Part shown: positions 798 to 27,082 of the stretch, one piece after another
Layout of the letters: every line of letters begins with the position of its first letter
How positions within the stretch are numbered: position 1 is the stretch's first letter
NCBI GenBank assembly: GCA_052426225.1
Contig: JBNJNM010000011.1
Location: 5,146,001 to 5,210,000 of the forward strand
Source of the DNA: Zancudomyces culisetae HAW-14-8
Lineage: Eukaryota; Fungi; Kickxellomycota
Direction: 5' to 3'
DNA length: 64,000 nucleotides
Notes under the pieces: model-generated
Databases searched by the model: none
What the model was told of the DNA's origin: nothing
Seen by the model: only the letters and a program-made list of their open reading frames with translations
Made by a program: the position numbers and the translations under genes

Positions 798-3700
798 CTT
801 GAATGCGCTTTATTTTTATTATTTTTTTATGTTTATAAGCTTTGGTTTTTTTGATTTTGGATTTTCTTTATATCTTTGAGATTCTATTAATACAAATTTT
901 AGGTTGGTTAAATTGAACGATGTTTAAACTATCAATAACCTTTACATATTATAAATAGTATAAACCCAAGTATATTTTTTTAAACAAGCCTGGTAGCAAA
1001 TTTGCTGAAATATATATTTTTAAACTTTTTTGCCACATACAATTCGATAGCAAATAATATTGGTCTAAAATTAATTACCAAATAAAATGTAGTTGCAGGT
1101 TTTAGGCGCTAGTTACAGTATCAAACCTGCCCAACGATTAAATAGGTGCAATAGTAAAGTGAAGCTTAGACCACCATTTTAATGAGACATTTACTCACCT
1201 TTGTGCTATTTTTGTTGAAAAATGTAATATCTCTCGCCTGTGCTAAATATTATTTATACGTCTTTGAAAGTAATTGTATCACTCTTTAACACATATATAA
1301 CAGGTTGGCGCCTTACGTAGGTTCTTTTTAAAACTTGATCAATCGTATGGATGGTGTATTTTCGAGAAAAATTCATTCCATAATTTCGCGTGTTATATCT
1401 CGCCAATTTAAAAAACAATACTAGTTTGCTTTTAGCTCCTGGTAATACATATCCTGGATTATTATTTATATCAACAAGTGTTAATCCTATCTTAAATTAT
1501 ATTTCTCTAGAAACGTTAACTAAAAGGATTTAAGAGTTTATTATATTATGATACAACCCCTCTATAAACGGATAAAGGAAAAGTCAGCTTTATGTGGTTG
1601 TAGAATAAATAATAAAAAAAACTCTCACATTTATTATCAAAAAAATACATGTTTTGTTGCACTCTATGCAATAGGGTGTTATTCTTGGTATGATTGTCAA
1701 GGTGAGATAAACATTCAAACGTATTCGCAGAGAGAGCGTTTTTACCAAAACAATTTGGTTGCATTAAAGTAGTTCAAAATATCACTGTTGCATTCAGCTC
1801 AACTTCATTATGAAGCCAAAACCCTTATTTTTCTGTGTCTCTACTGAGTTTGCTCAATAACCTCTGCTAGCCCAATAAAAATGACTTTTTACGCAATATA
1901 GAGCTGTTTGATTGAATAGTCTTTACCTTCAATAAACAAATGATATAATAATATTTTCATGGCAAGGTTTGTTTAAATTAAAAATGTCATTTTGCGAACC
2001 TTGGTAGCAATAAAAAAATAGAGGAAATGACATACCTTTTAATACAATGGGATATCACATAGGATATATGGTATCCAATTGCCATATTTTTAGGATAAGT
2101 CTATAAACAACCAAACCCATCAAAAACTGCAAACTTAGACATAAATTATTACTGGCTGTCTCGGAGGGTATGCTTGCAATCAAGAAATGAAAACATAATA
2201 CCATTTAATGCTGAAAATATTTGTGATGAATAGTGGATTTTTGAACCAATGGTCGGGTATGAAGTAGAAATCCAAAATTTTTTTGAACTTTCAGGATTAG
2301 CAATTCACCATACATCCAAAATGGGGCAAGTAGAAGTAAGAGCAAATAAAGGATTTGTAAACAGAGTTCACTTAAAAAGAGCATTAGAGAAATCTCCTGT
2401 CCAATACCAAAATAACGAAATACATGTAAACCTTGGGATTGCTAACCAAGCGGGTTGACAAGATAAACAGATCTGCTACCAACGTTAATGGTAAACTGTG
2501 GCGTTTTTACTTGATTTATTTGCGATCTCTTCTCCCCCCCCTCCCATCGCTTAACGCATACTATTTCTCTGGTTCGCAAAGGTTTAAATTAGTACACATT
2601 TTACCGTAATTGAGTTTGCGGTATACACTTCATTTAGGCAACCTCACAACTTGGCTGGATTAGTTTCGATTCAACTTGAAAAACCAGGATATTAATCGAG
2701 CTACTCAATTTTAATCAGAACCCTCTTTTACGGATAATATACCATTTTTTTGAAGCTTGGCCTGCTCTCGCATCTGCACTTGCTTCAAAAAAATATTACT
2801 GACAAGTTTATATATTATGTGTTATGTGCAAATACATCTAAATGTGTATGAGGATTAACAAACCTTCACTTTTTCTCAGCTAGTGATATCATATTCAGAT
2901 TTAGGTATACTGGTTATCTCTATATTGTAGTGTTTAAAAAACTTAACTCTCTTCAACCAAAAAACCGTCATAGTTGAGGGGAAGGAGAAAGTACCAAGTT
3001 GATATATATGCATAACCGTTGCGTTATACAAGACGCTTTTTTATATACCTTTGTTGACAGGATGTTGGCAAAAATTTTGACGTTGGTTGATTATTGTGTA
3101 TTTTTTTTTCCCAAGCTGTTTGAATACCTATTTCCTTTCTATACCACTTCTTGTTAAAATCAATATGTATTGGTTGTACTTTTCTAAACAAAATGTATAC
3201 GCTTTATAAAAACCATCCTTGGTTATAGTTGGTTTCTGAAATCACGCTGACATGGCTTAGTGTGCATTATAATTTTGAGGTTAATACCTTTTAAACGCAG
3301 ATTTTCCCAAACTTTGCTTTATTATAGTCAGATGAACTTGGAGGTATATTTAGTATTGCATCTGTAAAAAGTCTAGCTAAAACGTACCCATCCAAACCTT
3401 GCTTTGAACTCATCTGTATTCTTGTAAGCCAGTTCCTGCAATAACACCAATTTATCTCCTCTTAATGAAGATAATAGGACCCAGGAATCGTTATGAGTTA
3501 ATATTGATTTAGTTCTTGGGATACTCCACACCATAGTTACACGAATATTGAGTATTTTGCTGAGGCTGTGATACCAGTACAAGTATTATAATGCATATTT
3601 TACACAAGAGTGTAATCGAAATTAATAACAACACCATTTTACCACATTAGAACAAGTGATCAAGTGCTTTTTTTAACTGGGTTTGAGCTTAGGTTTGGGG

Positions 3701-14887: not shown

Positions 14888-17800
14888 TCAGGTGACAACC
14901 AAGGCACAAGCTATGGCCGAATCATCAGTATGGCTAATCGATACAACCACATTTACAATGCCATGTTCCTTCAGATACGCAGATATGGGTTGATTCAAAA
15001 CCACCTTGGGTGCGCCACTTCCCCCTTGTTCAGTTGGAACGGCCCTTATTTCGACATCAGAGTTGGATAGTTTTTTAATACATCCCAAAGATGGAGAGGA
15101 TTCGGGAGAGGATACCTTACAGATTTTTTCAAGATAATCGTATATGGAGTTCAGTACTGCAGTCTTTGCAGCTAGTTTTCCGGCAAAGGACGCTCGTGGA
15201 GATGGGCGGGATTTGCAATAGCTGATTTCGAGTTCTGTAAAATGAGTTTGAATAAATTCAGAATCATCGACACTAATCGATTTAATATGTATGATCTCGG
15301 TGTTTGGACGAGGAGTAAAAGTTGGAGTTGATATAGCTTGATGTGGTTGTGGCTGTGGCTGTGATTTAGGAATTTGAGTGTGGGTAATAGAAGCTGGCGC
15401 CCGAGTATCCTGTTCTACAGCGTTCGCAGTAAGAGATTTTATTGTTGCGTACACATGGCTTGGTGTTACTATGGATGTTATTCTATTAGATGTGTTTTGC
15501 TCAGCAGAAATCCTAAAGGTGTCAAACTCAACGCTGTACTCAGCACGAGCGTTTGGATTTAAAAGAATGCTGACTTCATTGGATTCGTCGTAGAGCCTCT
15601 GTTTCTCAGTCAAGTATAGTTTTGTTGTTGTCATGGTGTTGAAAAATATTTTGTTAGCATACATATTTCTTTTAGAAACCTTAGATTTGTATTCAAGATA
15701 TTTATCTTCAGAAATGGATGAGAACAGGTAGTCTGGGTTTAGAACTAAAATTTCGGCCCCAATTTGTCCAAATCCAAGTGATTTCATCAGACATGCTTTT
15801 ATGAAGGGTTTTTTTATAGAACGAGAAGGATGGTATACATAGAAGTGATCCTCAAACTCATTCGAAATATTGTCTGCGTTGTGACTACCAGGAATAACAC
15901 CCGTTAGTATTGACTGTAATACGCCATTAATAGCAAATGCAGCAGCTCCACCCTTTGTATGACCCATTAATCCCTTTTGACTGACGGCCGGACAAACGTT
16001 TCCATAGGTTCTTCCAAGCTTTTTAAACTGTGAGGCTAGAACTTCGGACTCGTTGTTGTCGTTTGCAGCTGTTGAGGTTCCATGACAGTTTACAAAATCA
16101 ATGTCGTCAGCAGTGAGGCCAAATGCGGCTAATGAGCCTCTAATAGGAGAAATGGAGGGGTTTTTAAGCCAAAAGTCATAACTCCAGTAATCCCGAGCGT
16201 TCTTTTTGAGTCTGGAGTACTGATCATTTAGAAAGACAAGTTTAGCGTTAAGTTCAGAAATCTTTTGAGGACTGGTGATATTAATTTCATTCAAGTCGTT
16301 TAAACTTAAAGATTTTGATGAATGTCCCGTGAAATCTGTAATTAAGGTGTTTAATTGATTGGAGAACCAAGAATCCACTTCTTCAAGTCTTTTTTTGAGT
16401 TGGCGCCTTCGATAGCTGATATTTAGCAGAGGATTGATTATAGAGCGCGGGGATTCGCGAACACTAGTAATCAATCCCTTACCAGGGGCGGGAAAAGATC
16501 TTCCAACCTTATCTGAACTTGTTCCAGAATATGCAATAATACCATAAATTGGTAGACCAATTTCCAACGCAGTAGCAGCAGTCATCAAAATTTGGACAGC
16601 AGAGCCTTGGCTGTCCATAAAGCCATGCCGCGTGCTAGTAAATGGTCTACTCATTTCTTTTGCTGTTCTTCCGCAAGCAAAATCCGTTGTAGAATTGGCA
16701 GTAGCTTGCATATTAGCAAACTCCATGGAGCATTCTTCAGTTACATCGTCGTGGCCCCCAGAAAGCATAATTTTGGCTTTTCCTGTTATTAGAGACTGGA
16801 CAGCAATGTCGATGGAAACAGCCCCAGTGGCACAGGTGCCAGATGGAACAACAAACGGACCAGAGGATGGTAGGATATATTTATTCACCCAATTGGCCAT
16901 GGAGCTGCAATAGCACTCATCAAAAACACCACCTTCGATGTATTCACTATTGTAGCGTCTTTTGAGTGTTGTGAAGGCAAGTTTTGAACCACCAACAGCA
17001 GATCCGATAGAATTTCCAATTTCTGAAACATGAACAAACTTGAATAATTCATAGGGATCCTCAATGCCTGCTCGCATGAATGCATCATTGGTTGCAACAA
17101 GACAAAATGCAGTCAAGTCATCAATTCGCTTGCAGATTTCGAGAGGGAGGCCGTACCTTTCAGCAGTCCAGAACTTTGGTACCAAACCAGAGACAAACCA
17201 TTCAAACTTTGAAGCCTTTGGAAGAAAGATCTTTGTACCAGCCAAGAAACGCACAAACCAGTCATCGCCACTACCCTTCCAGATTTCCACAGTCTCCTTG
17301 TGTTTGAGTTTGAAGTAGCGAGCCTCCTCTTCTGTTGTTTTTATTGGCTTCATCTTTTCATGAATAACAACTTCGCGGATAACTTTTCTGCAATCTGGAT
17401 CATAACCTTCCAAGAGTTCGGGATCAACTCGTCTAAGTCCGCTGTGTTCAGTTATCAATTTACCATAAATCAGCTTAATCTTTGTATCCTCAACAGGGTC
17501 ACCAGATTTTGCATCGACCCAACCCTGGTATCGCTGGCCGTTTGGAAGAGTACCACGATGGTATCTTATGAAACCCATAATCCAGCCCAACATAATACAT
17601 CCATCATTTGAATATTCGTCATGGATTTCCATATCCCACCGAGTCTCTGCGCTTCCAAATGGCCCAACTTCACCAAACCCTACAACCACTACAGTCTTAT
17701 CGAGGTTTAGCATTTCACCAACACCAAATTTTTCTTTTAGCTCCGAATAGTCTCGTAGTTTTGGAAAATCTATTCTGAGATTTGAGCGTTGCTTGATTTC

Positions 17801-20800
17801 AACTTGTTTATATATATCCTCGACATTCTCACCTTCTGTCGTTTTGAAATCAAACGAAGTTTCATATTTTATTTGCTTTTGAATCAGGCTTTGATTGATT
17901 AAATCCTGTCGAATCATAAATGTTTTTTTGCTGAACTCGAGAATAAACCCAAACCCACCGCTAATATCTGCATAAATTGGTCGTTCATCACAAAGCCTTC
18001 GAATCTCTGGATGCAAAAGCCCAAGAACATTAAAAGCAACCTCCTTAGTCGAAAATGTCTTTCCTCCTTGTTTCTCCATCCCTTCAGCAAGAATATTGTT
18101 CTGGTTCATAAGCCCAGTTCCGCGTGCCCAACCTACAACTACACCCGCAATCGATATATATTCCCCCCAGGATTCGGCAGCCCACTTGTCAAACAATGTC
18201 TCCAGACCGATCTTGCTTTCAGCATACAGCCCATCTCCACCAAAACCGCCATGGTTGAGTGACAACGGCACGAAAACCATTGTCGAACGCATTTTTATCC
18301 CGTATTTCTCTTTGTTAATTTTGACTCTTCCAATTAGCCGCAGTATATTTACCATCATTGTTCTGTGTGCCACCTCTGAAACTGAATCTAGATTTGTGAT
18401 GTCTTTACCTACTTCTGACATTGCACCAAATGGCACTACTGCATCTAAAATCATTCCTAACCCTCTGCTCTTCTTTGGTAGAAATATGTAATCAACTAGT
18501 GAATTAACATCCTGTTGTGACGACTGATTAAAAGGAAGTAGTGTTAAACTGGAACCCTTGGAGCCATACTTTTTATACAACTTTTCAAACCGTTTGGCCG
18601 CCGAATAGCTGAATTTTGATGTTGTGGCAATGACATTTGCGCCACCCATCAATAATGCTTTTACAATTTCTATTCCTATAGAGCCTTTTCCACAACCAGT
18701 AACTAACACATTTTTACTAGCAAATGTAATTCCATTGAATGAAATATCCAGTAATGCACCAAGGTAATACAGCGTACTTGCTTTATCATAATTGAATGTG
18801 TCGTATCTATGACGCCGTCGAAGATGTAAGAAGGGTAAACGGTCTTTGTAAATCATTGAATCTGCAAACTTTACATAATCCTCAAACAAAAGACCAGACT
18901 TAATATGTGTCTTTTCAACATTGTTCAGTGTCCTGATCTTGGTTTTAAAACCATCAGTTTTGTTTTTAACATTGCGAATTTCATTTGATATTTTCTCGAG
19001 ATCGTCGCTAGTGAGTTTTTCTGGCAAGTTTAGTGCGGCCGAGAGTTTATGGAGCAGCTCTTCAGTAAGCAGATGCTGTTCGTTTTGTTCGTCAAATCTG
19101 TCTCCAGTATCTATACCAAATGTCATTGAGTTTATATAATCAATAATGTCGTTTATTCCTTCACGCTGCACCTCATTATACTCAATATCACCCTTATTTG
19201 AAATGGTTGTCTTGGGTCCATAATACTGCATAATTCCATAATAAAGTGGACTCTTATCGACAGCCATCTCGCAGCTCTCCAACAAATCACTCAAAAACAA
19301 CTTGAGTTGAACTATGTTGTAGTGGTTATGTAGGTTCACCAGCTTGTTGGATTCTAGCAGTTTAATTTTGTATTTAATGGAAGCAACAAGGCGAGGTGTT
19401 GATTTATTCACAAAGTATGGCTTTTCAGAATCCAAATCTCCTGCTTTTACATCAGTTGTCAAATTTAGCGTATCATAAAATACCCGCTCAAGTTGCCATT
19501 CTACCCAGTTCCAGTATGAATCAAATATCCGACACTTGAGTGATGTGAAAATAGGTTTGATTCCGTCACTGTATCGCTCATCGTACTCGGACTCCCAAAT
19601 ATCTAGCTGGTGCTTTGCTTTGCGGTAGCTTGCTTCAATATCATCCAAGGTGGTTAAAGATTCATTGGAAACATCCCTTCCCAAAAAATCTGAAATTGCT
19701 ATTTGCTGAGACGACAATAACTTTTTGTAGTGCGAAACATACTCGTTAAACTCTTTCGAGTCAATGGTAACCCCAGATGTACCAACATTTGATGTTTCAG
19801 ACTTTTGAGAATATTGTATTCCAAATATTTTAGCATATTGATTGGCAACTATTTCCAACCACGAATTCATGTCCTTTTCATTTGCCAATCGGTTTTCAGG
19901 TTCAAATGTAGTTCCCAGCAAAAGCAAACAGTCAGCACGCAATGGACCTAGTCCGTACTTTTTGTTTAGCATTTCCTTGATCTTGGGAATGGTAAATCCA
20001 CCCGGCATCTTTGAGTTTACCAACTTTGACACCCTTACAGATGAAAATGGTCCCAGTCCGCCAGAAGAGTTATTAAGTTGGCCAAAAAGCTCAACCAGTG
20101 GCATTTCCTCAGCCTTATCAGGTAGTTGATTTTGAAACTCTTTTTGTAAATCACTGATTATTTCATTTTGCATTGCTGATTTGCCATTGACTAGGTCCTT
20201 AATAGATTTGGAATCGGAAATATCAGTGTAACCTTTTTTCAGCTTTTGAGCAACTATAGAGGTAATGATTTCACGAGCTGTGATTTTTACATCTTCTATT
20301 TGTGCAGCTACTCCTTGAGATATATTCCCATCGCCAGAACTGTTTTCGAGAGCAGGGCTGTAATGTAGATCAGCTGGTGTTGCTGTTGGTGTTGCTGTTT
20401 CAGCTGGTTTGGTGACTTGTTCACTTGGACGAGACGTTGAAGTCTGTGTGCCTGCAGCTTCACTTTGTTTGTCGGTAGAGAGCTTTTTACTGGATATTGG
20501 AAGAGAGGCGTTTGATTCTTGAGGTTCGTTGGATTCATTTTGTCTGTTGGCGTGATAAATGAATTCTTTATCGCTAATACAATGTAGTATAGTACGCTGG
20601 ATTCCCTCCAAATCGTCTTGATCCTTGAACTTGGCATGTATCGTTCTTGTTGCCATTCCAACCAACACGGAACTGGGCCCGACCTCAATAGCTTGTTCAA
20701 TATTACAGTCTCCGAATATGGTATTTTGAGTTTCAATCCATTGAACAGGGCTGGCAAATTGATATGACAACAGTTCAACCAAAAGAATGTGGCCCAGTCG

Positions 20801-23800
20801 TTGTTTCTCATGTCGATCAGCCAAATGTGATTCGTCCCAATGATCAATGACCTCTCTGAGGTGCGGTGAATGGGTAGCACTGTAGACCATTTCAAAGTAT
20901 GCTTTCGATACAGCAAACATCTTTCCTGTTACATTTGGAATATATCTACGTTCTAGCTGTTCAACTACTACATTTTCCTTTGTGATTGATTTGTGTAGGA
21001 ATTGTCGCATCAGTGGTACCCCCGACAATAGAAAAGAGGAATGGAATGGCACATCAATCCCAGGAATAGGAATGGTACATTTGCTTCGAGTTAGGGATAT
21101 ATACCCATTGCTAGCATTGTACTTTTTATCAGATTTAGCAATTATTTGGCAAATTGTCTTTTCTACAAACGCACTAAATTCTTGCATCATTTCTGTATCA
21201 ACTATATCTTCAGACTCGGTATCATGACTTTTCTTAAATATACCATTTAATTGTTCTTTCTGGTAAAATAGAACATCTGTTACCTGGGAAAATATGTCCA
21301 GTAACACCAGTTCACCAGCAATCACATACTGCCAGTTATAAATGTTGTAGTTTACAATCTCCATTAAACCAGGTCTTTTTTCTTTGATCATATCAACAAC
21401 CTTTTCAAACATCATTTCCATGAATTTTGAAGCTATTCGGCTTGGATTGAAGGCAACCATTCCGTACTTACTGGCTCCCTCCTTATTGCGTTCTACAGAT
21501 AACTGCATGGCCAATCCGCGATAAAACACCAGTTCAATCATTGTTTCTACTTTTACCATTCCACCCATAACCAACAATGCGCAGAATTCTCCAAGTGAAT
21601 GGCCAGCAAATACAAGATCTTTGTGCACAAGGTTGTTGTTCAACATATCCTGCGATGCCGCCATTGCAAAAAGCATAATTGAGGGCTGGGTAAACTGTGT
21701 TGCATTGAGAAGACCTGTTGGCGACCTGAATGTATAGCTTTCACTGCGCTCGTTGATTTCTGGAAAAATACTTATATACTCGGATTCGCCCTGTTTATTG
21801 GTTATTTCGTATCTCATATTTATATACCTGGTTCTAATTTCCTTACCCCTTGAACCCCCAAAATATATAGTCTTTTCGCTTGGGTTCAGTCTGATTATCT
21901 CCAACAACGAGAATCCATATAGATCGTCCATATACTTGTCAACCGAATTCCAGATTTCTTTCACAGCTTCCGAGCCGTTGTACAGATCCACACCCATATT
22001 AACCACTTGCGAACCTTGCCCCGTAAACAGGTAAGCTGTTTTTGGTGGATTTATTTCTGCAACACCCTCCAGTACTTTGTTGCCAATGCTGGTGAATGTT
22101 TCAACTTTGATTATTTTTCGTCCATTGCGCATGCCTACATGTGTTAATTTGGTTTCTAAGGTGTCTCCTGGTAAGACCATGTCCAAAAAGTTCACTTCGT
22201 ACACTGCTACTCGTTCTGGATGGCCCTCTGCAGCGCATGTTTCCACAACTCTTCTGGTCGCAGCTGAAGTCCACATTCCATGAACAATTGTTCCAGGAAG
22301 TCCACTAAGATTGGCAAAGAAGATGTTTGTGTGAATAGGATTGAGATCGGCTGTAACCAGTGCGAATTCCTTATTTGAAATCCGAGTGTGGCTGATTGCC
22401 AAATGTCTCAAATCTTTGGGAATTGCTGAATATCCTCCATCTTCAAAATATTGTGGTTCGTCAAAGGGCTCTCCGTTTCGTTCTAGATATGCCAGTACAG
22501 GATTACCATATGCATGTCCGCTTTCATAATCTACACATCCAACCTCAACAGGAAGGGTGTTTTGAGATAAGACCTCGACCGATCCAACGGTTTTTACGCT
22601 GCTAAACTCCTTGATGCCTTTATATCTCACACTACTAACCAAATTAAAGACAAGTACTGAACCAACTTGAACCAACCGATTATAGTTTTCTCCGGCTATT
22701 AACCATTCTTTACTTTGCAACACCTTCAAATCCTCTTCTGTGTTTAGCGATATTTTTGCCTTGGTTTCGTCTTTTATGCTAAAAGTATTTTGGTAGTCAT
22801 TGAATTTACCTCTGAACAGCGAGCTTGTAACAACTTTGTAATGGGGTACTCCGTCTTTCATTAAAATTCCCTCGGAGGTTGTCATCTTCCCCATTGGGCT
22901 GTTTGTAACTGATAGTAATCTTGCAGTAGCACTTAAATTATCGCTGGTTTTGAGCAGTTGGTAATCACAAAGTGATTCCAGTTTTACCGAGTAGTGTACA
23001 ATGTCAAGCATGTTTGCATCTGCGCAATTGTGTGATGCAGTACAAATTGCTCCCCACAGAATACTGAATACAAAATCCATCGGAATATATGAATAGCCTT
23101 CTATGTTGTTGTATACATACTGATGCGATGTATTATCCACCACTTGACAGAACTTGGCTACATCTTTTGGGCTAACAATAACACTATTTTGAATCACAGT
23201 TCTTTCTCCAGTCTCGTCAACGTGCATGGTATATTGCTCCGGATGATGCACCCATAGCTGTTTATAAAATTCGCTCACCCGTGAATTCCTCTCGTTTACA
23301 ATTTCATGAATCAGAGCGTATGGGGTCTCTGGTTTATATGAAAACTTGAAAAAAACACTATAAGTATTAGCGTCTGGCTTGTCGTTCATAGTGATTGTGA
23401 TTGTTTTATCCTTACATTCATACAATATCTTTATACTTTTGAAATGATGTTCATTTTCAACACACAGCTCCGTAGGATATCCACTATCATCAAAGTGTAT
23501 CGTGGTTGTGGTTTTGGGAATAGGGGCTAGTGTAGATCTAATATTATTTTCTGTAACGTCTTCTCCCCTAACTATTGACCGCGAAAAGAGCAAAGCAGAC
23601 AGCCACGACTGCTTGCCACCACAAAGAACGCTATACCACTCGTCACTTGTAGGCAAACGATCTGTATCATCCTGAAGTAGTTTAAATGTCTTTTTATTTG
23701 CCATCGAAACACACTCAATCGTGCCCGGAAGAGTTTTAGTTGTGTTTACACCAATCTCAACTGAGTATTCGATCTCAGGTACTCTGGTTTCATCACCTTC

Positions 23801-26800
23801 GTACATTGTATTCAAAAGAGAACGAATGTGACTTTGATTGATACCATTCAAGATATCAGAAACTGGTTCATCAACCACGTTTGCATACGAAACGGCCACT
23901 GGCCCCTGTAAAATGCATACTTTCTGTGCATCTTGACCCACTACAGAGTCCAAATATTCTGACTGCCACAAACTGTCCTTTTTAAACCAGGAATCAAGGT
24001 TTTCATCCAAAATGGGAATGAATGGTACTGGCTTTCTGCCAGAAATCTGACATATATCGAGAAAATAATGAATATCTTGCAACAAAATGTGTACATAACC
24101 ACAATCCTTATATGATTCAGTGATGACACTAGTTGCCATCATTGGGTTTAGTATTTGATTTCTGGAATGTAGCACTGAGCTCTGATTTGGTTTACTAAAC
24201 CTTTCTTCAACTCGACGCAAGAAGTCTTCAAAAACGTCCATATATGAGGAATGAATCCATTTATCATTTTTATGATCAAACATCAAATCAACCATCCTAA
24301 ATATAACTTCTGAGTATGTCATCTCTTCCAAATCGCACACATCTCCGTTTTCTTTACGTCCAAACCAAGGCCTTTGATAATCCTTATTGAGCCGCCCAAT
24401 GATATACTCCTTTTTCTGCTTTAAAATCTTTTTTCTCTCCTCGACAGGCAGACTAAAGATGGTTTTATCAAGCTCATCCCAAAGCATCACCGCTCTATTA
24501 GCAATCATATGGATTGGCTGGCCGAGTTCAGAAATCACAGAGATGATCCCACCAGCTGGTCCATTATATGTGTCTGCCCACTTTATATCCGGAACACCGG
24601 GTGTGTCCACTATCAACTGTTTCACTTTATAACTTGTAGGACATTCTTTTGCAACCATCATCCTCGACCCAAGAAGAATACCATCAAATGGCATTCTAGG
24701 TCTTTCATAAGCCATACTCCAGTCACCAGTAATATACGGCAATGTGTCTTTATCGCCACCAAACCCTGATCCCGCGACCAAAACAACGTTTTCGCACATC
24801 CTAATCTCGGCATATGTTTCTAAAATTGGCTGGTGGAAATCTTCGGAGCTATGGTGCCCACCGCCACGCCCGCCTGTCCACTGAAGAATAATATTCATTT
24901 TGGGGTTATTTTTAGCCACTAAAACAACCTGCCTTATAGATTCAGCATTGCCTGGTTTAAAAGAAATATGCTTTATTCCGCATTGAATCATTCCTTCAAT
25001 TAATTCGGTTGATGTTTCCAAACTAGGAACACCTGCCGAAATACAAACTCCATCGATTGGAGCACCCTCGAGTCTCATTCTGTTTAGCAGCGGTAGCTGA
25101 AGACTTGCCATTCTTGCGTTCAAGAAAATTACATTTACTGTGATCCCATCACCTGGTCCAATGTTTCTTCGTATTTTTTCAACCTCCTCTCGTAGTGATG
25201 CCTCAGAATAATGACCTCCACCAGCAAGCTCAATATGATAGCCAGAATTAAGAACAGACGATACAAAATCAGACCCAATAGTCGATGGTGTCATACCAGC
25301 AACCATGATATGGGGCTTTCCTAGAAGTCGTGTCATGCGTGTGTCAAGCATAAGGCTTCCGGTGTACTTATTTTGCACTATTTTTGGTCCAAACTCCTTT
25401 TCCCAGTTTTGACTATATGTCACAGAATTAGGATCGTTGTTTAACAAATCTACAAGTGTTTTTGTATCTTCAGGTATAATTTTATTGGTACTTGCAAAAA
25501 TGACTTGAACACCAGTGCCCAGTTTGTTGTTTGCGGTCAATGAGCCAATTCCTGAAATTCCACCAGGACCAAAGTCAACAATGTGTGTAATGTCTTTTAA
25601 CTCTGTTGCCTTAATCCAGTCTAGTTTCTTTGCGCAGATTTCTTCGATAAGCGTTCTTGTCAGATTCTTACATGTTACCAAACTTCTACCATCAAACGAA
25701 GAATACACTGGAATGAGTAACTCTTCATTTGAAAATTCACAATTGTAAACTTTTGTAAAGCGGACCATTTCCTCAACGTATTTTCTCAGATGTTCGCTAT
25801 GAAATGGGGCCATAATGTTCAAAAACATCGAACTTGGGATATGCGATCGTCTCAGTGACGATGAATCAGTTTTCAAATTCTTGTTTTGTCTTGTGTAAAG
25901 CTCGTTCATTTTTCTTAAAAGCAAAAGGAGCGAGTTTTTGGGACCAGAAACCACAAATGATTTTATTCCATTTCGTATTGAGACATAATTCTTTTTTTCC
26001 GGCTTTAGTCCCTTATTTAGCGAAGCTGTCAAAAGTTTAAGCTCTTGGATACTTATCTTGTCGACCAGCAGCATATTGCTGGGCTTTCCTAAAAATATTT
26101 TTTTATCAATTATCGGAAAGCCCGTGTCAAAGGCGTCATCACGAAGCCTCTTTTGAACGACATTGCCCAGAATTGATAAAATTCCTAGTGCCTTCAATGA
26201 ATTGAAAATATAGCTCTTTTCGTCAGTTGATGATGCAACGGCGACTGCCGCAATAGAGCCCTGGCTATGACCAACAAATCCTTTGAAATAGCCTGAAATA
26301 CATCCTGGTGTAGATGACAGAGATTTATATAGCACCATGTAGCTTATTAGCTGCAATAATCCGATCAACGGAAAGCTAACAGAGACTTGAGAGAAAAACT
26401 GACTATCTGGAACTGGTTCCTTTTGTTCTAACCATTCGAGTATATTAAGCTCCTTTTCAATAGAAATCTCTTGATCTATGGCTTTGAAAATGTTTTTCAA
26501 ATATGTGGATGCCTCCTTAACAAATGGGTAAACCAATGGTCTGTAAGTGTTATAATATTCTTTTATTTCTTCAAAATAGTTGTCTGTAACCCCTTGTCCT
26601 CCAAAAACGCCAAAAAGCCCAACAGTTCCCTGTGAAGCCAACATAAGCAATTTGCTTTTTGTTATACCAAGCTTATCTGAGTCGCCATCTGAGTCGTTGA
26701 TACACTGACTCAGCGTGAAATCTGATTCCACAAACAGTTTAATATATTCTTGTTGCAAATCGTATTCATAGTCTTTTACGCCTACATGTATGTCATTATC

Positions 26801-27082
26801 TTTTAAGTATCCTTTTTTCAGTTCTATCAGCAATCTTTCCAATATTTTTACATATTGCTCAGTCTCTAGATTTGGCTTGCAGTTATTATTAAAGAACTTT
26901 ATAAAATCAAGAACCACTCTTAATCGAGACCCGTCGTTTTCATCAAACACTAGGTGTTGGTAGTCGTTTTCCTGCTGAAATTCCAATGATATTTGATACA
27001 TATAGTCATATATACCACTATCCACTTGTATGGGACAGTTGTCCTTGTAAAGATATATTTTGGAATATTTCTTGCTCTCCAT
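14888..27082 (-). CDS. FAS2: Single-chain (fused beta+alpha) type I fatty acid synthase: AT-ER-DH-MPT-ACP-KR-KS-PPT, intronless, 4064 aa
   Basis: AT GHSQG; ER GGRGGGHHS; DH TADLNPIH..LPGTIVHGMW; MPT FTGQGSQ, GHSLGEF, VPFHS; ACP GKSAMQNE; KR VTGCGKGSIG, YAESK; KS SGTCATG, HGTST, GHTKG; C-terminal AcpS-like PPT (SFAG..AAK.., VSISHTD). Confidence 0.97.
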   Translation of the reverse strand: MESKKYSKIYLYKDNCPIQVDSGIYDYMYQISLEFQQENDYQHLVFDENDGSRLRVVLDFIKFFNNNCKPNLETEQYVKILERLLIELKKGYLKDNDIHVGVKDYEYDLQQEYIKLFVESDFTLSQCINDSDGDSDKLGITKSKLLMLASQGTVGLFGVFGGQGVTDNYFEEIKEYYNTYRPLVYPFVKEASTYLKNIFKAIDQEISIEKELNILEWLEQKEPVPDSQFFSQVSVSFPLIGLLQLISYMVLYKSLSSTPGCISGYFKGFVGHSQGSIAAVAVASSTDEKSYIFNSLKALGILSILGNVVQKRLRDDAFDTGFPIIDKKIFLGKPSNMLLVDKISIQELKLLTASLNKGLKPEKKNYVSIRNGIKSFVVSGPKNSLLLLLRKMNELYTRQNKNLKTDSSSLRRSHIPSSMFLNIMAPFHSEHLRKYVEEMVRFTKVYNCEFSNEELLIPVYSSFDGRSLVTCKNLTRTLIEEICAKKLDWIKATELKDITHIVDFGPGGISGIGSLTANNKLGTGVQVIFASTNKIIPEDTKTLVDLLNNDPNSVTYSQNWEKEFGPKIVQNKYTGSLMLDTRMTRLLGKPHIMVAGMTPSTIGSDFVSSVLNSGYHIELAGGGHYSEASLREEVEKIRRNIGPGDGITVNVIFLNARMASLQLPLLNRMRLEGAPIDGVCISAGVPSLETSTELIEGMIQCGIKHISFKPGNAESIRQVVLVAKNNPKMNIILQWTGGRGGGHHSSEDFHQPILETYAEIRMCENVVLVAGSGFGGDKDTLPYITGDWSMAYERPRMPFDGILLGSRMMVAKECPTSYKVKQLIVDTPGVPDIKWADTYNGPAGGIISVISELGQPIHMIANRAVMLWDELDKTIFSLPVEERKKILKQKKEYIIGRLNKDYQRPWFGRKENGDVCDLEEMTYSEVIFRMVDLMFDHKNDKWIHSSYMDVFEDFLRRVEERFSKPNQSSVLHSRNQILNPMMATSVITESYKDCGYVHILLQDIHYFLDICQISGRKPVPFIPILDENLDSWFKKDSLWQSEYLDSVVGQDAQKVCILQGPVAVSYANVVDEPVSDILNGINQSHIRSLLNTMYEGDETRVPEIEYSVEIGVNTTKTLPGTIECVSMANKKTFKLLQDDTDRLPTSDEWYSVLCGGKQSWLSALLFSRSIVRGEDVTENNIRSTLAPIPKTTTTIHFDDSGYPTELCVENEHHFKSIKILYECKDKTITITMNDKPDANTYSVFFKFSYKPETPYALIHEIVNERNSRVSEFYKQLWVHHPEQYTMHVDETGERTVIQNSVIVSPKDVAKFCQVVDNTSHQYVYNNIEGYSYIPMDFVFSILWGAICTASHNCADANMLDIVHYSVKLESLCDYQLLKTSDNLSATARLLSVTNSPMGKMTTSEGILMKDGVPHYKVVTSSLFRGKFNDYQNTFSIKDETKAKISLNTEEDLKVLQSKEWLIAGENYNRLVQVGSVLVFNLVSSVRYKGIKEFSSVKTVGSVEVLSQNTLPVEVGCVDYESGHAYGNPVLAYLERNGEPFDEPQYFEDGGYSAIPKDLRHLAISHTRISNKEFALVTADLNPIHTNIFFANLSGLPGTIVHGMWTSAATRRVVETCAAEGHPERVAVYEVNFLDMVLPGDTLETKLTHVGMRNGRKIIKVETFTSIGNKVLEGVAEINPPKTAYLFTGQGSQVVNMGVDLYNGSEAVKEIWNSVDKYMDDLYGFSLLEIIRLNPSEKTIYFGGSRGKEIRTRYINMRYEITNKQGESEYISIFPEINERSESYTFRSPTGLLNATQFTQPSIMLFAMAASQDMLNNNLVHKDLVFAGHSLGEFCALLVMGGMVKVETMIELVFYRGLAMQLSVERNKEGASKYGMVAFNPSRIASKFMEMMFEKVVDMIKEKRPGLMEIVNYNIYNWQYVIAGELVLLDIFSQVTDVLFYQKEQLNGIFKKSHDTESEDIVDTEMMQEFSAFVEKTICQIIAKSDKKYNASNGYISLTRSKCTIPIPGIDVPFHSSFLLSGVPLMRQFLHKSITKENVVVEQLERRYIPNVTGKMFAVSKAYFEMVYSATHSPHLREVIDHWDESHLADRHEKQRLGHILLVELLSYQFASPVQWIETQNTIFGDCNIEQAIEVGPSSVLVGMATRTIHAKFKDQDDLEGIQRTILHCISDKEFIYHANRQNESNEPQESNASLPISSKKLSTDKQSEAAGTQTSTSRPSEQVTKPAETATPTATPADLHYSPALENSSGDGNISQGVAAQIEDVKITAREIITSIVAQKLKKGYTDISDSKSIKDLVNGKSAMQNEIISDLQKEFQNQLPDKAEEMPLVELFGQLNNSSGGLGPFSSVRVSKLVNSKMPGGFTIPKIKEMLNKKYGLGPLRADCLLLLGTTFEPENRLANEKDMNSWLEIVANQYAKIFGIQYSQKSETSNVGTSGVTIDSKEFNEYVSHYKKLLSSQQIAISDFLGRDVSNESLTTLDDIEASYRKAKHQLDIWESEYDERYSDGIKPIFTSLKCRIFDSYWNWVEWQLERVFYDTLNLTTDVKAGDLDSEKPYFVNKSTPRLVASIKYKIKLLESNKLVNLHNHYNIVQLKLFLSDLLESCEMAVDKSPLYYGIMQYYGPKTTISNKGDIEYNEVQREGINDIIDYINSMTFGIDTGDRFDEQNEQHLLTEELLHKLSAALNLPEKLTSDDLEKISNEIRNVKNKTDGFKTKIRTLNNVEKTHIKSGLLFEDYVKFADSMIYKDRLPFLHLRRRHRYDTFNYDKASTLYYLGALLDISFNGITFASKNVLVTGCGKGSIGIEIVKALLMGGANVIATTSKFSYSAAKRFEKLYKKYGSKGSSLTLLPFNQSSQQDVNSLVDYIFLPKKSRGLGMILDAVVPFGAMSEVGKDITNLDSVSEVAHRTMMVNILRLIGRVKINKEKYGIKMRSTMVFVPLSLNHGGFGGDGLYAESKIGLETLFDKWAAESWGEYISIAGVVVGWARGTGLMNQNNILAEGMEKQGGKTFSTKEVAFNVLGLLHPEIRRLCDERPIYADISGGFGFILEFSKKTFMIRQDLINQSLIQKQIKYETSFDFKTTEGENVEDIYKQVEIKQRSNLRIDFPKLRDYSELKEKFGVGEMLNLDKTVVVVGFGEVGPFGSAETRWDMEIHDEYSNDGCIMLGWIMGFIRYHRGTLPNGQRYQGWVDAKSGDPVEDTKIKLIYGKLITEHSGLRRVDPELLEGYDPDCRKVIREVVIHEKMKPIKTTEEEARYFKLKHKETVEIWKGSGDDWFVRFLAGTKIFLPKASKFEWFVSGLVPKFWTAERYGLPLEICKRIDDLTAFCLVATNDAFMRAGIEDPYELFKFVHVSEIGNSIGSAVGGSKLAFTTLKRRYNSEYIEGGVFDECYCSSMANWVNKYILPSSGPFVVPSGTCATGAVSIDIAVQSLITGKAKIMLSGGHDDVTEECSMEFANMQATANSTTDFACGRTAKEMSRPFTSTRHGFMDSQGSAVQILMTAATALEIGLPIYGIIAYSGTSSDKVGRSFPAPGKGLITSVRESPRSIINPLLNISYRRRQLKKRLEEVDSWFSNQLNTLITDFTGHSSKSLSLNDLNEINITSPQKISELNAKLVFLNDQYSRLKKNARDYWSYDFWLKNPSISPIRGSLAAFGLTADDIDFVNCHGTSTAANDNNESEVLASQFKKLGRTYGNVCPAVSQKGLMGHTKGGAAAFAINGVLQSILTGVIPGSHNADNISNEFEDHFYVYHPSRSIKKPFIKACLMKSLGFGQIGAEILVLNPDYLFSSISEDKYLEYKSKVSKRNMYANKIFFNTMTTTKLYLTEKQRLYDESNEVSILLNPNARAEYSVEFDTFRISAEQNTSNRITSIVTPSHVYATIKSLTANAVEQDTRAPASITHTQIPKSQPQPQPHQAISTPTFTPRPNTEIIHIKSISVDDSEFIQTHFTELEISYCKSRPSPRASFAGKLAAKTAVLNSIYDYLEKICKVSSPESSPSLGCIKKLSNSDVEIRAVPTEQGGSGAPKVVLNQPISAYLKEHGIVNVVVSISHTDDSAIACALVVT

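Follow-up and report, generated by a model that had tools for sequence, protein, structure and literature searches.

To our knowledge, all characterised fungal type I fatty acid synthases (FASs) have six equivalent ketosynthase (KS) sites. Defective FAS chains can complement one another within one oligomer, as in the interallelic complementation of yeast fas2 and in animal FAS dimers engineered to have a single active subunit, and cases are known in which reciprocal loss has fixed a heteromer of paralogues. The fungal PPT is active solely as a multimer, and the KS dimerises it before the barrel closes (PMC6972935). In AcpS, the CoA site lies between chains, with Lys51, Pro86, Ile110, Ser111 and Asp112 provided by one chain and Asp8, Glu57, Lys61 and Gly64 by the other (PMC3447402). 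KS pockets also draw on the neighboring protomer: the FabB pocket is closed by Q113′ of the other protomer (10.1101/2022.04.04.486996), the acyl channel of KasA includes a partner helix (PMC9519891), and residues 127–132 of FabF lie in an ACP-docking surface that is provided mostly by the monomer not being served (PMC7138838). The long pocket of FabB cannot exist in both subunits simultaneously, and in type II PKSs residues of the chain-length factor (CLF) end the tunnel (PMC9006962). In yeast FAS, the substitutions G1250S, M1251W and F1279Y shorten the products, F1279Y having been taken from Aspergillus C6 producers (PMC5353594).

The window analyzed here is a 64-kb (64,000-nucleotide) stretch of the genome of Zancudomyces culisetae, an insect-gut fungus of the Harpellales. 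From the way in which its FAS gene and a second gene of the same genome have lost opposite parts of the same sites, we consider it probable that the two encode an obligate heteromer of single-chain FASs, organized like a KS/chain-length-factor pair, in which the window FAS is the KS-active half.

Results

The window FAS is one of two unlinked paralogues

The window FAS is encoded by an intron-free reading frame that is open throughout its 4064 amino acids. Its features are as follows (positions are those of the window):

14888–27082, minus strand: fungal type I FAS in a single chain of 4064 aa, AT-ER-DH-MPT-ACP-KR-KS-PPT; of the two paralogues, the one with an active KS
25643–26635, minus strand: AT domain with GGQG, GHSQG (Ser at 26264–26266) and PFH intact; erased in the sister gene on contig C12
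19823–25630, minus strand: ER-DH-MPT-ACP block with about 99% DNA identity to the sister (gene conversion), except for a divergent patch at 24047–24265
15713–17722, minus strand: KS domain with Cys-His-His intact (triad at 16832–16834, 16082–16084 and 15959–15961)
16994–16999, minus strand: A1250-V1251 pair; the Ala is a gate-adjacent change common to the active copy of S. mucronatum, the Val is the norm of the lineage
16847–16960, minus strand: eroded segment equivalent to yeast 1263–1300, intact in the KS-dead sister; putative wall of the partner's pocket, by homology to FabF 127–138
14891–15310, minus strand: half-site PPT domain, keeping G1811, GAP (15008–15016) and SISH (14930–14941)

The protein has the complete fungal FAS set of Pfam domains, including the scaffold insertions, which identifies it as a fungal type I FAS, and its KS matches 2uv8 with E=3e-178. 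The catalytic motifs of AT, ER, DH, MPT, ACP (Ser), KR and KS are all present. The PPT is the exception: D1772, E1774 and E1817, which mark a self-activating PPT, are missing from the window FAS and kept by its sister. An earlier note on this DNA had reported an intact KS Cys-His-His and MPT Arg (VFYRG), as well as Ala, Val and Tyr at yeast Fas2 positions 1250, 1251 and 1279, the positions engineered in yeast FAS (PMC5353594). The former is confirmed. The latter holds as well: window 16505–17101 aligns without gaps to residues 1216–1414 of S. cerevisiae Fas2 (2uv8_A), the yeast number being the window FAS protein position minus 2112, and this places A1250 at 16997–16999, V1251 at 16994–16996, Y1279 at 16910–16912 and C1305 at 16832–16834.

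An independent earlier assembly of Z. culisetae contains proteins corresponding to both paralogues, P0208 (99.3% identical to the window FAS) and P0207 (99% identical to the sister). P0208 carries the same KS segment save one N>S, and a sequencing artefact as the source of the odd segment is thus rejected. Between strains, the unconverted half of the window FAS differs from the second allele by 24 synonymous and 9 non-synonymous changes (pN/pS ~0.11). The gene is under purifying selection, and this ratio rejects its decay as a pseudogene. An AlphaFold model built on a 16-row alignment had a pLDDT of 44. The neighbors within the 64-kb window include BBP/SF1, SH3BGR and a cytochrome P450 (36027–37820, ~9 kb upstream of the FAS start) that nothing ties to the FAS; we saw no clear gene cluster around the window FAS, and no synteny or cluster around its orthologues.

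The genome holds three FAS genes: a canonical copy on contig C21, the window FAS on C11 and the sister on C12, which is unlinked to it. A further 78-kb contig, C16, is a haplotig of the C12 region, with the same flanking genes and a FAS that is 99.5% identical, and does not add a fourth gene. The C21 FAS clusters with the housekeeping enzymes of Smittium and is ~44% identical to either paralogue. The window FAS and its sister fall in a second Harpellales FAS clade (support 100/100), to which Furculomyces boomerangus and Smittium simulii each contribute a single complete, unsplit orthologue (P0002 and P0004, respectively). The window FAS is accordingly neither an orthologue of the housekeeping enzyme, a separate gene in a different clade, nor canonical in its tunnel. 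The earlier note had named a sole FAS in the genome as grounds for abandoning its view of this gene as a specialized paralogue; that possibility is rejected, and the separate canonical gene and the second clade both favor this part of its interpretation. A limited literature search found no description of these Harpellales genes. In the C21 gene, a one-base frameshift interrupts the MPT at ~1249010, just after PFHSSFLL. It is probably an assembly error, because the gene is otherwise highly conserved; were it genuine, the fungus would have no intact cytosolic FAS apart from the split pair.

In the C12 sister, the KS Cys and the first His are both replaced by Tyr, the AT is erased, and the Asp/Glu residues of the PPT are kept. 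It retains the stretch equivalent to yeast 1263–1300, F1279 included, and close to the interface some of its residues are bulky or unusual (F1250, F1257 and P1280). The two genes share ~99% DNA identity over amino acids ~485–2420 and are saturated at synonymous sites outside this region; 4-fold sites differ by 1% inside the block at 19823–25630 and by 50–80% outside. The duplication is old, and gene conversion still acts on the pair. It is unlikely that the shared middle is a product of long-read misassembly; in the older assembly, each of the two proteins is incomplete and starts inside the block. A patch of ~70 amino acids in the ER region (24047–24265, aa 940–1012) escapes the conversion that homogenizes the surrounding 5.8 kb, and is possibly a contact surface specific to each paralogue.

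KS losses are mirrored between paralogues in two species

Upon comparison with 117 reference KS domains, the erosion of the window FAS exceeds the variation among the references, which bears out the claim of the earlier note that normally near-invariant KS stretches are rewritten. The segment carries D1267S, D1273G, Q1276D, F1279Y, L1290Y, S1293P and K1299V. In the references, Q1276, T1282 and L1290 are invariant and D1273 is ~100% conserved. No reference (0/117) has lost two or more of D1267, D1273, Q1276, F1279 and W1286; the window FAS has lost four.

A second pair is found in S. mucronatum. Its P0003 has an active KS and a PPT that is deleted outright, and its P0039 has a dead KS (Cys>Asn, with both His lost) and a complete PPT in the DNA. 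In both species, a partner that lacks the catalytic Cys/His yet keeps the interface segment is therefore present (C12 and P0039). In both active copies D1267, D1273, Q1276 and F1279 have been replaced, by residues that differ between Z. culisetae and S. mucronatum (S/G, G/R, D/L and Y/L, respectively); all four are kept in both dead copies and in both unsplit orthologues. The loops around the catalytic center show the reverse pattern, being kept by the active and lost by the dead copies. We compared the losses of the two pairs across 246 conserved KS columns. Losses seen only in the active copy were shared between the species 8 times against 2.8 expected (p=0.002), and losses seen only in the dead copy 27 times against 9.1 expected (p=2e-11). 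Overlaps across types (active versus dead) numbered 1 and 3, with no excess. Within 1263–1300, which is essentially the stretch flagged before any paralogue came to light, active-only and dead-only losses stand at 12:2, compared to 41:94 elsewhere (Fisher p=8e-5, species pooled); taken by species, the segment test gives p=4e-4 for Z. culisetae alone and p=0.08, not significant, for S. mucronatum alone.

In trees of the linker-KR-KS(N) portion (region 2431–3340), the paralogues pair within species, and a grouping of active with active copy is rejected (p-AU 5e-5); trees of the KS alone are weak (p-AU 0.07 and 0.04). Two independent duplications, one in Z. culisetae and one in S. mucronatum, are likely from these sequences but fall short of certain, because past conversion could mimic pairing within species.

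The location of the segment suggests why it would be lost from the active chain. Residues 1263–1300 align to FabF ~121–158, with D1273 at FabF 131 and F1279 at FabF 137/138, and the docking residues 127–132 of FabF are homologous to yeast 1269–1274. We presume that F133′ and I138′ of FabF line the partner's pocket and that fungal F1279 does likewise. By this homology, 1263–1300 would serve the pocket of the partner KS subunit. In the window FAS it would face the sister's dead pocket and therefore be free to drift.

Each paralogue keeps half of a PPT site

The PPT is a second split site, independent of the KS. The window FAS has lost GxGxD-x-E, W1813, E1817 and K1821 from its PPT and kept G1811, GAP and SISH. 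The C12 sister is the exact reverse: the Asp/Glu/Lys residues are kept and the GAP/SISH half is lost (SISH has become NIVF). This division matches that of the AcpS site between two chains, with one set of residues in each paralogue. In S. mucronatum, where the active copy (P0003) is without a PPT, both halves are predicted in the dead copy, and both are there. Loss of the PPT alone proves nothing, because PPT-less FASs are common in Kickxellales. A Pfam ACPS scan of the Z. culisetae genome found a sole stand-alone PPT, an AcpS-type, intron-containing gene on C7 (~908500) that is probably the mitochondrial ACP transferase.

Among the Kickxellales, the FASs of Coemansia and Martensiomyces (P0007, P0009, P0043, P0099 and others) are much expanded, lack the PPT and differ widely at 1250–1251. 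One of the Martensiomyces proteins (P0001, 3210 aa) matches the KS query with about double the score of the other hits, as if it had two KS domains, and may be a fused gene model.

Tunnel residues 1250, 1251 and 1279

The earlier note had read the three tunnel residues as substitutions of a chain-shortening type. For position 1251 there is no substitution: Val is the commonest state (65 of the 117 references) and is also found in the genome's own housekeeping FAS, and hence tells nothing about chain length. Val is the usual residue in these fungi, and M1251V as a derived change is rejected; sharing of the residues with the housekeeping FASs of relatives, which the note had itself listed as counting against its reading, is what we find at this position. 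Position 1250 is non-Gly in 31 of the 117 references, mostly paralogues; it is Ala in both KS-active copies (Z. culisetae and S. mucronatum) and Ser in S. simulii. G1250A is thus a genuine change, on the side of the tunnel that the chain itself provides; it is a plausible chain-length change and the sole remaining hint of shorter chains.

Tyr at 1279 is rare, occurring in 1 of the 117 references and in 6 of 141 more distant representatives that served as a wider set, all six of which have S, A or C at 1250. The window FAS shares this hexanoate-synthase-like combination of a small non-Gly residue at 1250 with Tyr1279. However, its Tyr does not sit inside an otherwise intact partner-facing segment, as D1267, D1273, Q1276, L1290 and S1293 are lost; in the Y1279 homologues elsewhere the surrounding segment is intact, with an acidic residue at 1273 and N1281 kept, whereas the window FAS has lost the whole stretch. 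By analogy with the bacterial enzymes, Y1279 most likely faces the partner's dead pocket, because the stretch is lost in both KS-active and kept in both KS-dead copies. With V1251 ancestral and Y1279 in an eroded stretch, the short-chain reading of the window FAS is weak. Nor can the direction of a shift in chain length be called: G1250A could shorten the chain, and a freed second pocket could possibly lengthen it (PMC9006962). A cleaner candidate for a chain-shortened FAS is P0004, the second FAS of S. simulii, which is unsplit and combines a natural G1250S with the canonical F1279.

Discussion

A model for a split FAS

These observations suggest a model in which the second, non-housekeeping FAS of the Harpellales was duplicated and each copy kept just its half of one composite site, because the KS and PPT sites span two chains. 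The window FAS chain would contribute the KS triad with its surrounding loops, the GAP/SISH side of the PPT and an AT that works; the C12 sister would contribute the Asp/Glu/Lys side of the PPT and, with residues 1263–1300, the wall of the functional KS pocket. The working tunnel would then be lined by A1250, V1251, T1304, V1335, C1339 and F1343 from the window FAS and by F1279′, P1280′ and F1257′ from the sister. In assembly, A:B dimers would form via the KS, and one composite PPT site would activate the ACPs prior to trimerisation; only mixed A:B dimers would be activated, because it is the KS dimer that brings the PPTs together. The simplest outcome would be a 3+3 barrel in which three KS sites work; the sister, whose KS is dead, has also lost its AT, as would suit a chamber that lacks KS activity. 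P0039, the dead-KS chain of S. mucronatum, keeps its AT, ER, DH, MPT and ACP motifs without conversion, and a simple silent-chamber model therefore leaves it unexplained. We infer the cross-subunit roles, the co-assembly, the 3+3 stoichiometry and the co-expression from the sequences. Expressed alone, without its partner, the window FAS would likely fail, and its product is not predictable from sequence.

One refinement of the heteromer, rather than an exclusive rival to it, holds that the asymmetry is adaptive: one KS site was given up, and the working tunnel takes a fixed, possibly longer or unusual chain. The restriction of the FabB long pocket to one subunit at a time and the role of CLF residues in ending the type II PKS tunnel (PMC9006962) would fit, as would the sister's bulky or odd F1250, F1257 and P1280 and a split that seems to have arisen twice in the same direction. 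Yet reciprocal decay after duplication yields the same pattern with no adaptive gain, the residues differ between the two species, and Furculomyces and S. simulii still have an unsplit orthologue; we regard adaptation as a possibility to be entertained with some doubt. It is equally speculative that the Harpellales twice turned a homo-hexameric FAS into an asymmetric 3+3 enzyme with a CLF-like chain, a split PPT and a distinct acyl product in the insect gut.

The co-occurrence of A1250 and Y1279 in homologues with the hexanoate-synthase-like pattern (6/6) counts, as does the lack of linkage between the two genes, against the heteromer and invites a different explanation, namely a stand-alone homomeric FAS, trans-activated like HexA, in which A1250 and Y1279′ would narrow the tunnel to give C6–C12 chains. 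We consider this unlikely. It draws on the shortening effect of G1250S and F1279Y in yeast and the origin of F1279Y in Aspergillus C6 producers (PMC5353594), on the recurrence of the pairing in 6 of 141 representatives, on the presence of a canonical FAS to supply C16/C18, and on the integrity of all catalytic motifs but the PPT. But the other Y1279 homologues keep the acidic 1273 and N1281 where the stretch is gone from the window FAS, the active copy of S. mucronatum has Leu rather than Tyr at 1279, V1251 is ancestral, and this explanation accounts neither for the mirror-image conservation of the dead copies nor for a PPT divided into reciprocal halves. Co-assembly of each paralogue with the housekeeping FAS, and not with the other, is very improbable: the housekeeping chain does have both halves of both sites, but it is only ~44% identical, and an exact mirror image between the paralogues would be unneeded. 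Slimmer still is the chance that both paralogues are decaying independently, with frames kept open partly by gene conversion, which would suit their long branches and homogenized middle but is largely refuted by the low pN/pS between strains in the unconverted half, by 0 stops in 4000 codons despite saturated synonymous sites, and by losses that are spatially complementary and recur in a second species.

If the window FAS and its sister do form a heteromer, KS/chain-length-factor pairs have had a second kind of beginning, this time within a megasynthase. Nature would have tested more than once whether neutral reciprocal loss gives rise to obligate heteromers, with the unsplit orthologues as controls, and the pair could serve as an engineering scaffold that lets either side of the acyl tunnel be altered independently of the other. 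The mirror pattern also maps the KS and PPT residues that work across subunits, and it advises caution: reading tunnel residues from a single chain is invalid when the partner is a different gene.

Comparison with known systems

Fungal type I FAS is itself known, and what is new here is probably its reciprocal split. In domain order and catalytic motifs, the window FAS is the same as S. cerevisiae Fas1/Fas2 and the single-chain FASs of early-diverging fungi. Those enzymes are built from identical KS-bearing chains, and their six KS sites are all equal; in the present case, two paralogues apparently share out the KS wall and the PPT. Like Aspergillus HexA/HexB and StcJ/StcK and the engineered yeast FAS, the window FAS is a non-housekeeping enzyme with a small residue at 1250, Tyr1279 and no complete PPT of its own, a likeness judged by residue pattern. 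It differs from the hexanoate synthases in being a single chain, in its ancestral Val at 1251, in the eroded 1263–1300, in having a KS-dead sister that keeps F1279, and in that no cluster is evident. Compared with the complementation of yeast fas2 and the animal FAS dimers, which involve laboratory mutants, the arrangement proposed here would be natural, fixed and arisen twice.

The KS/CLF pair likewise joins an active KS to a condensation-dead duplicate that makes the acyl tunnel complete (PMC9006962, PMC6638757), as the dead chain would here. In contrast to the adjacent genes of bacterial type II PKSs, the present partners are domains of 4000-aa megasynthases whose genes lie unlinked on C11 and C12; Tyr or Asn replaces the Cys of the dead copy, and the PPT is split as well. 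Judged by its reciprocal halves, the window FAS would thus work like the KS/CLF heterodimers without being a member of them.
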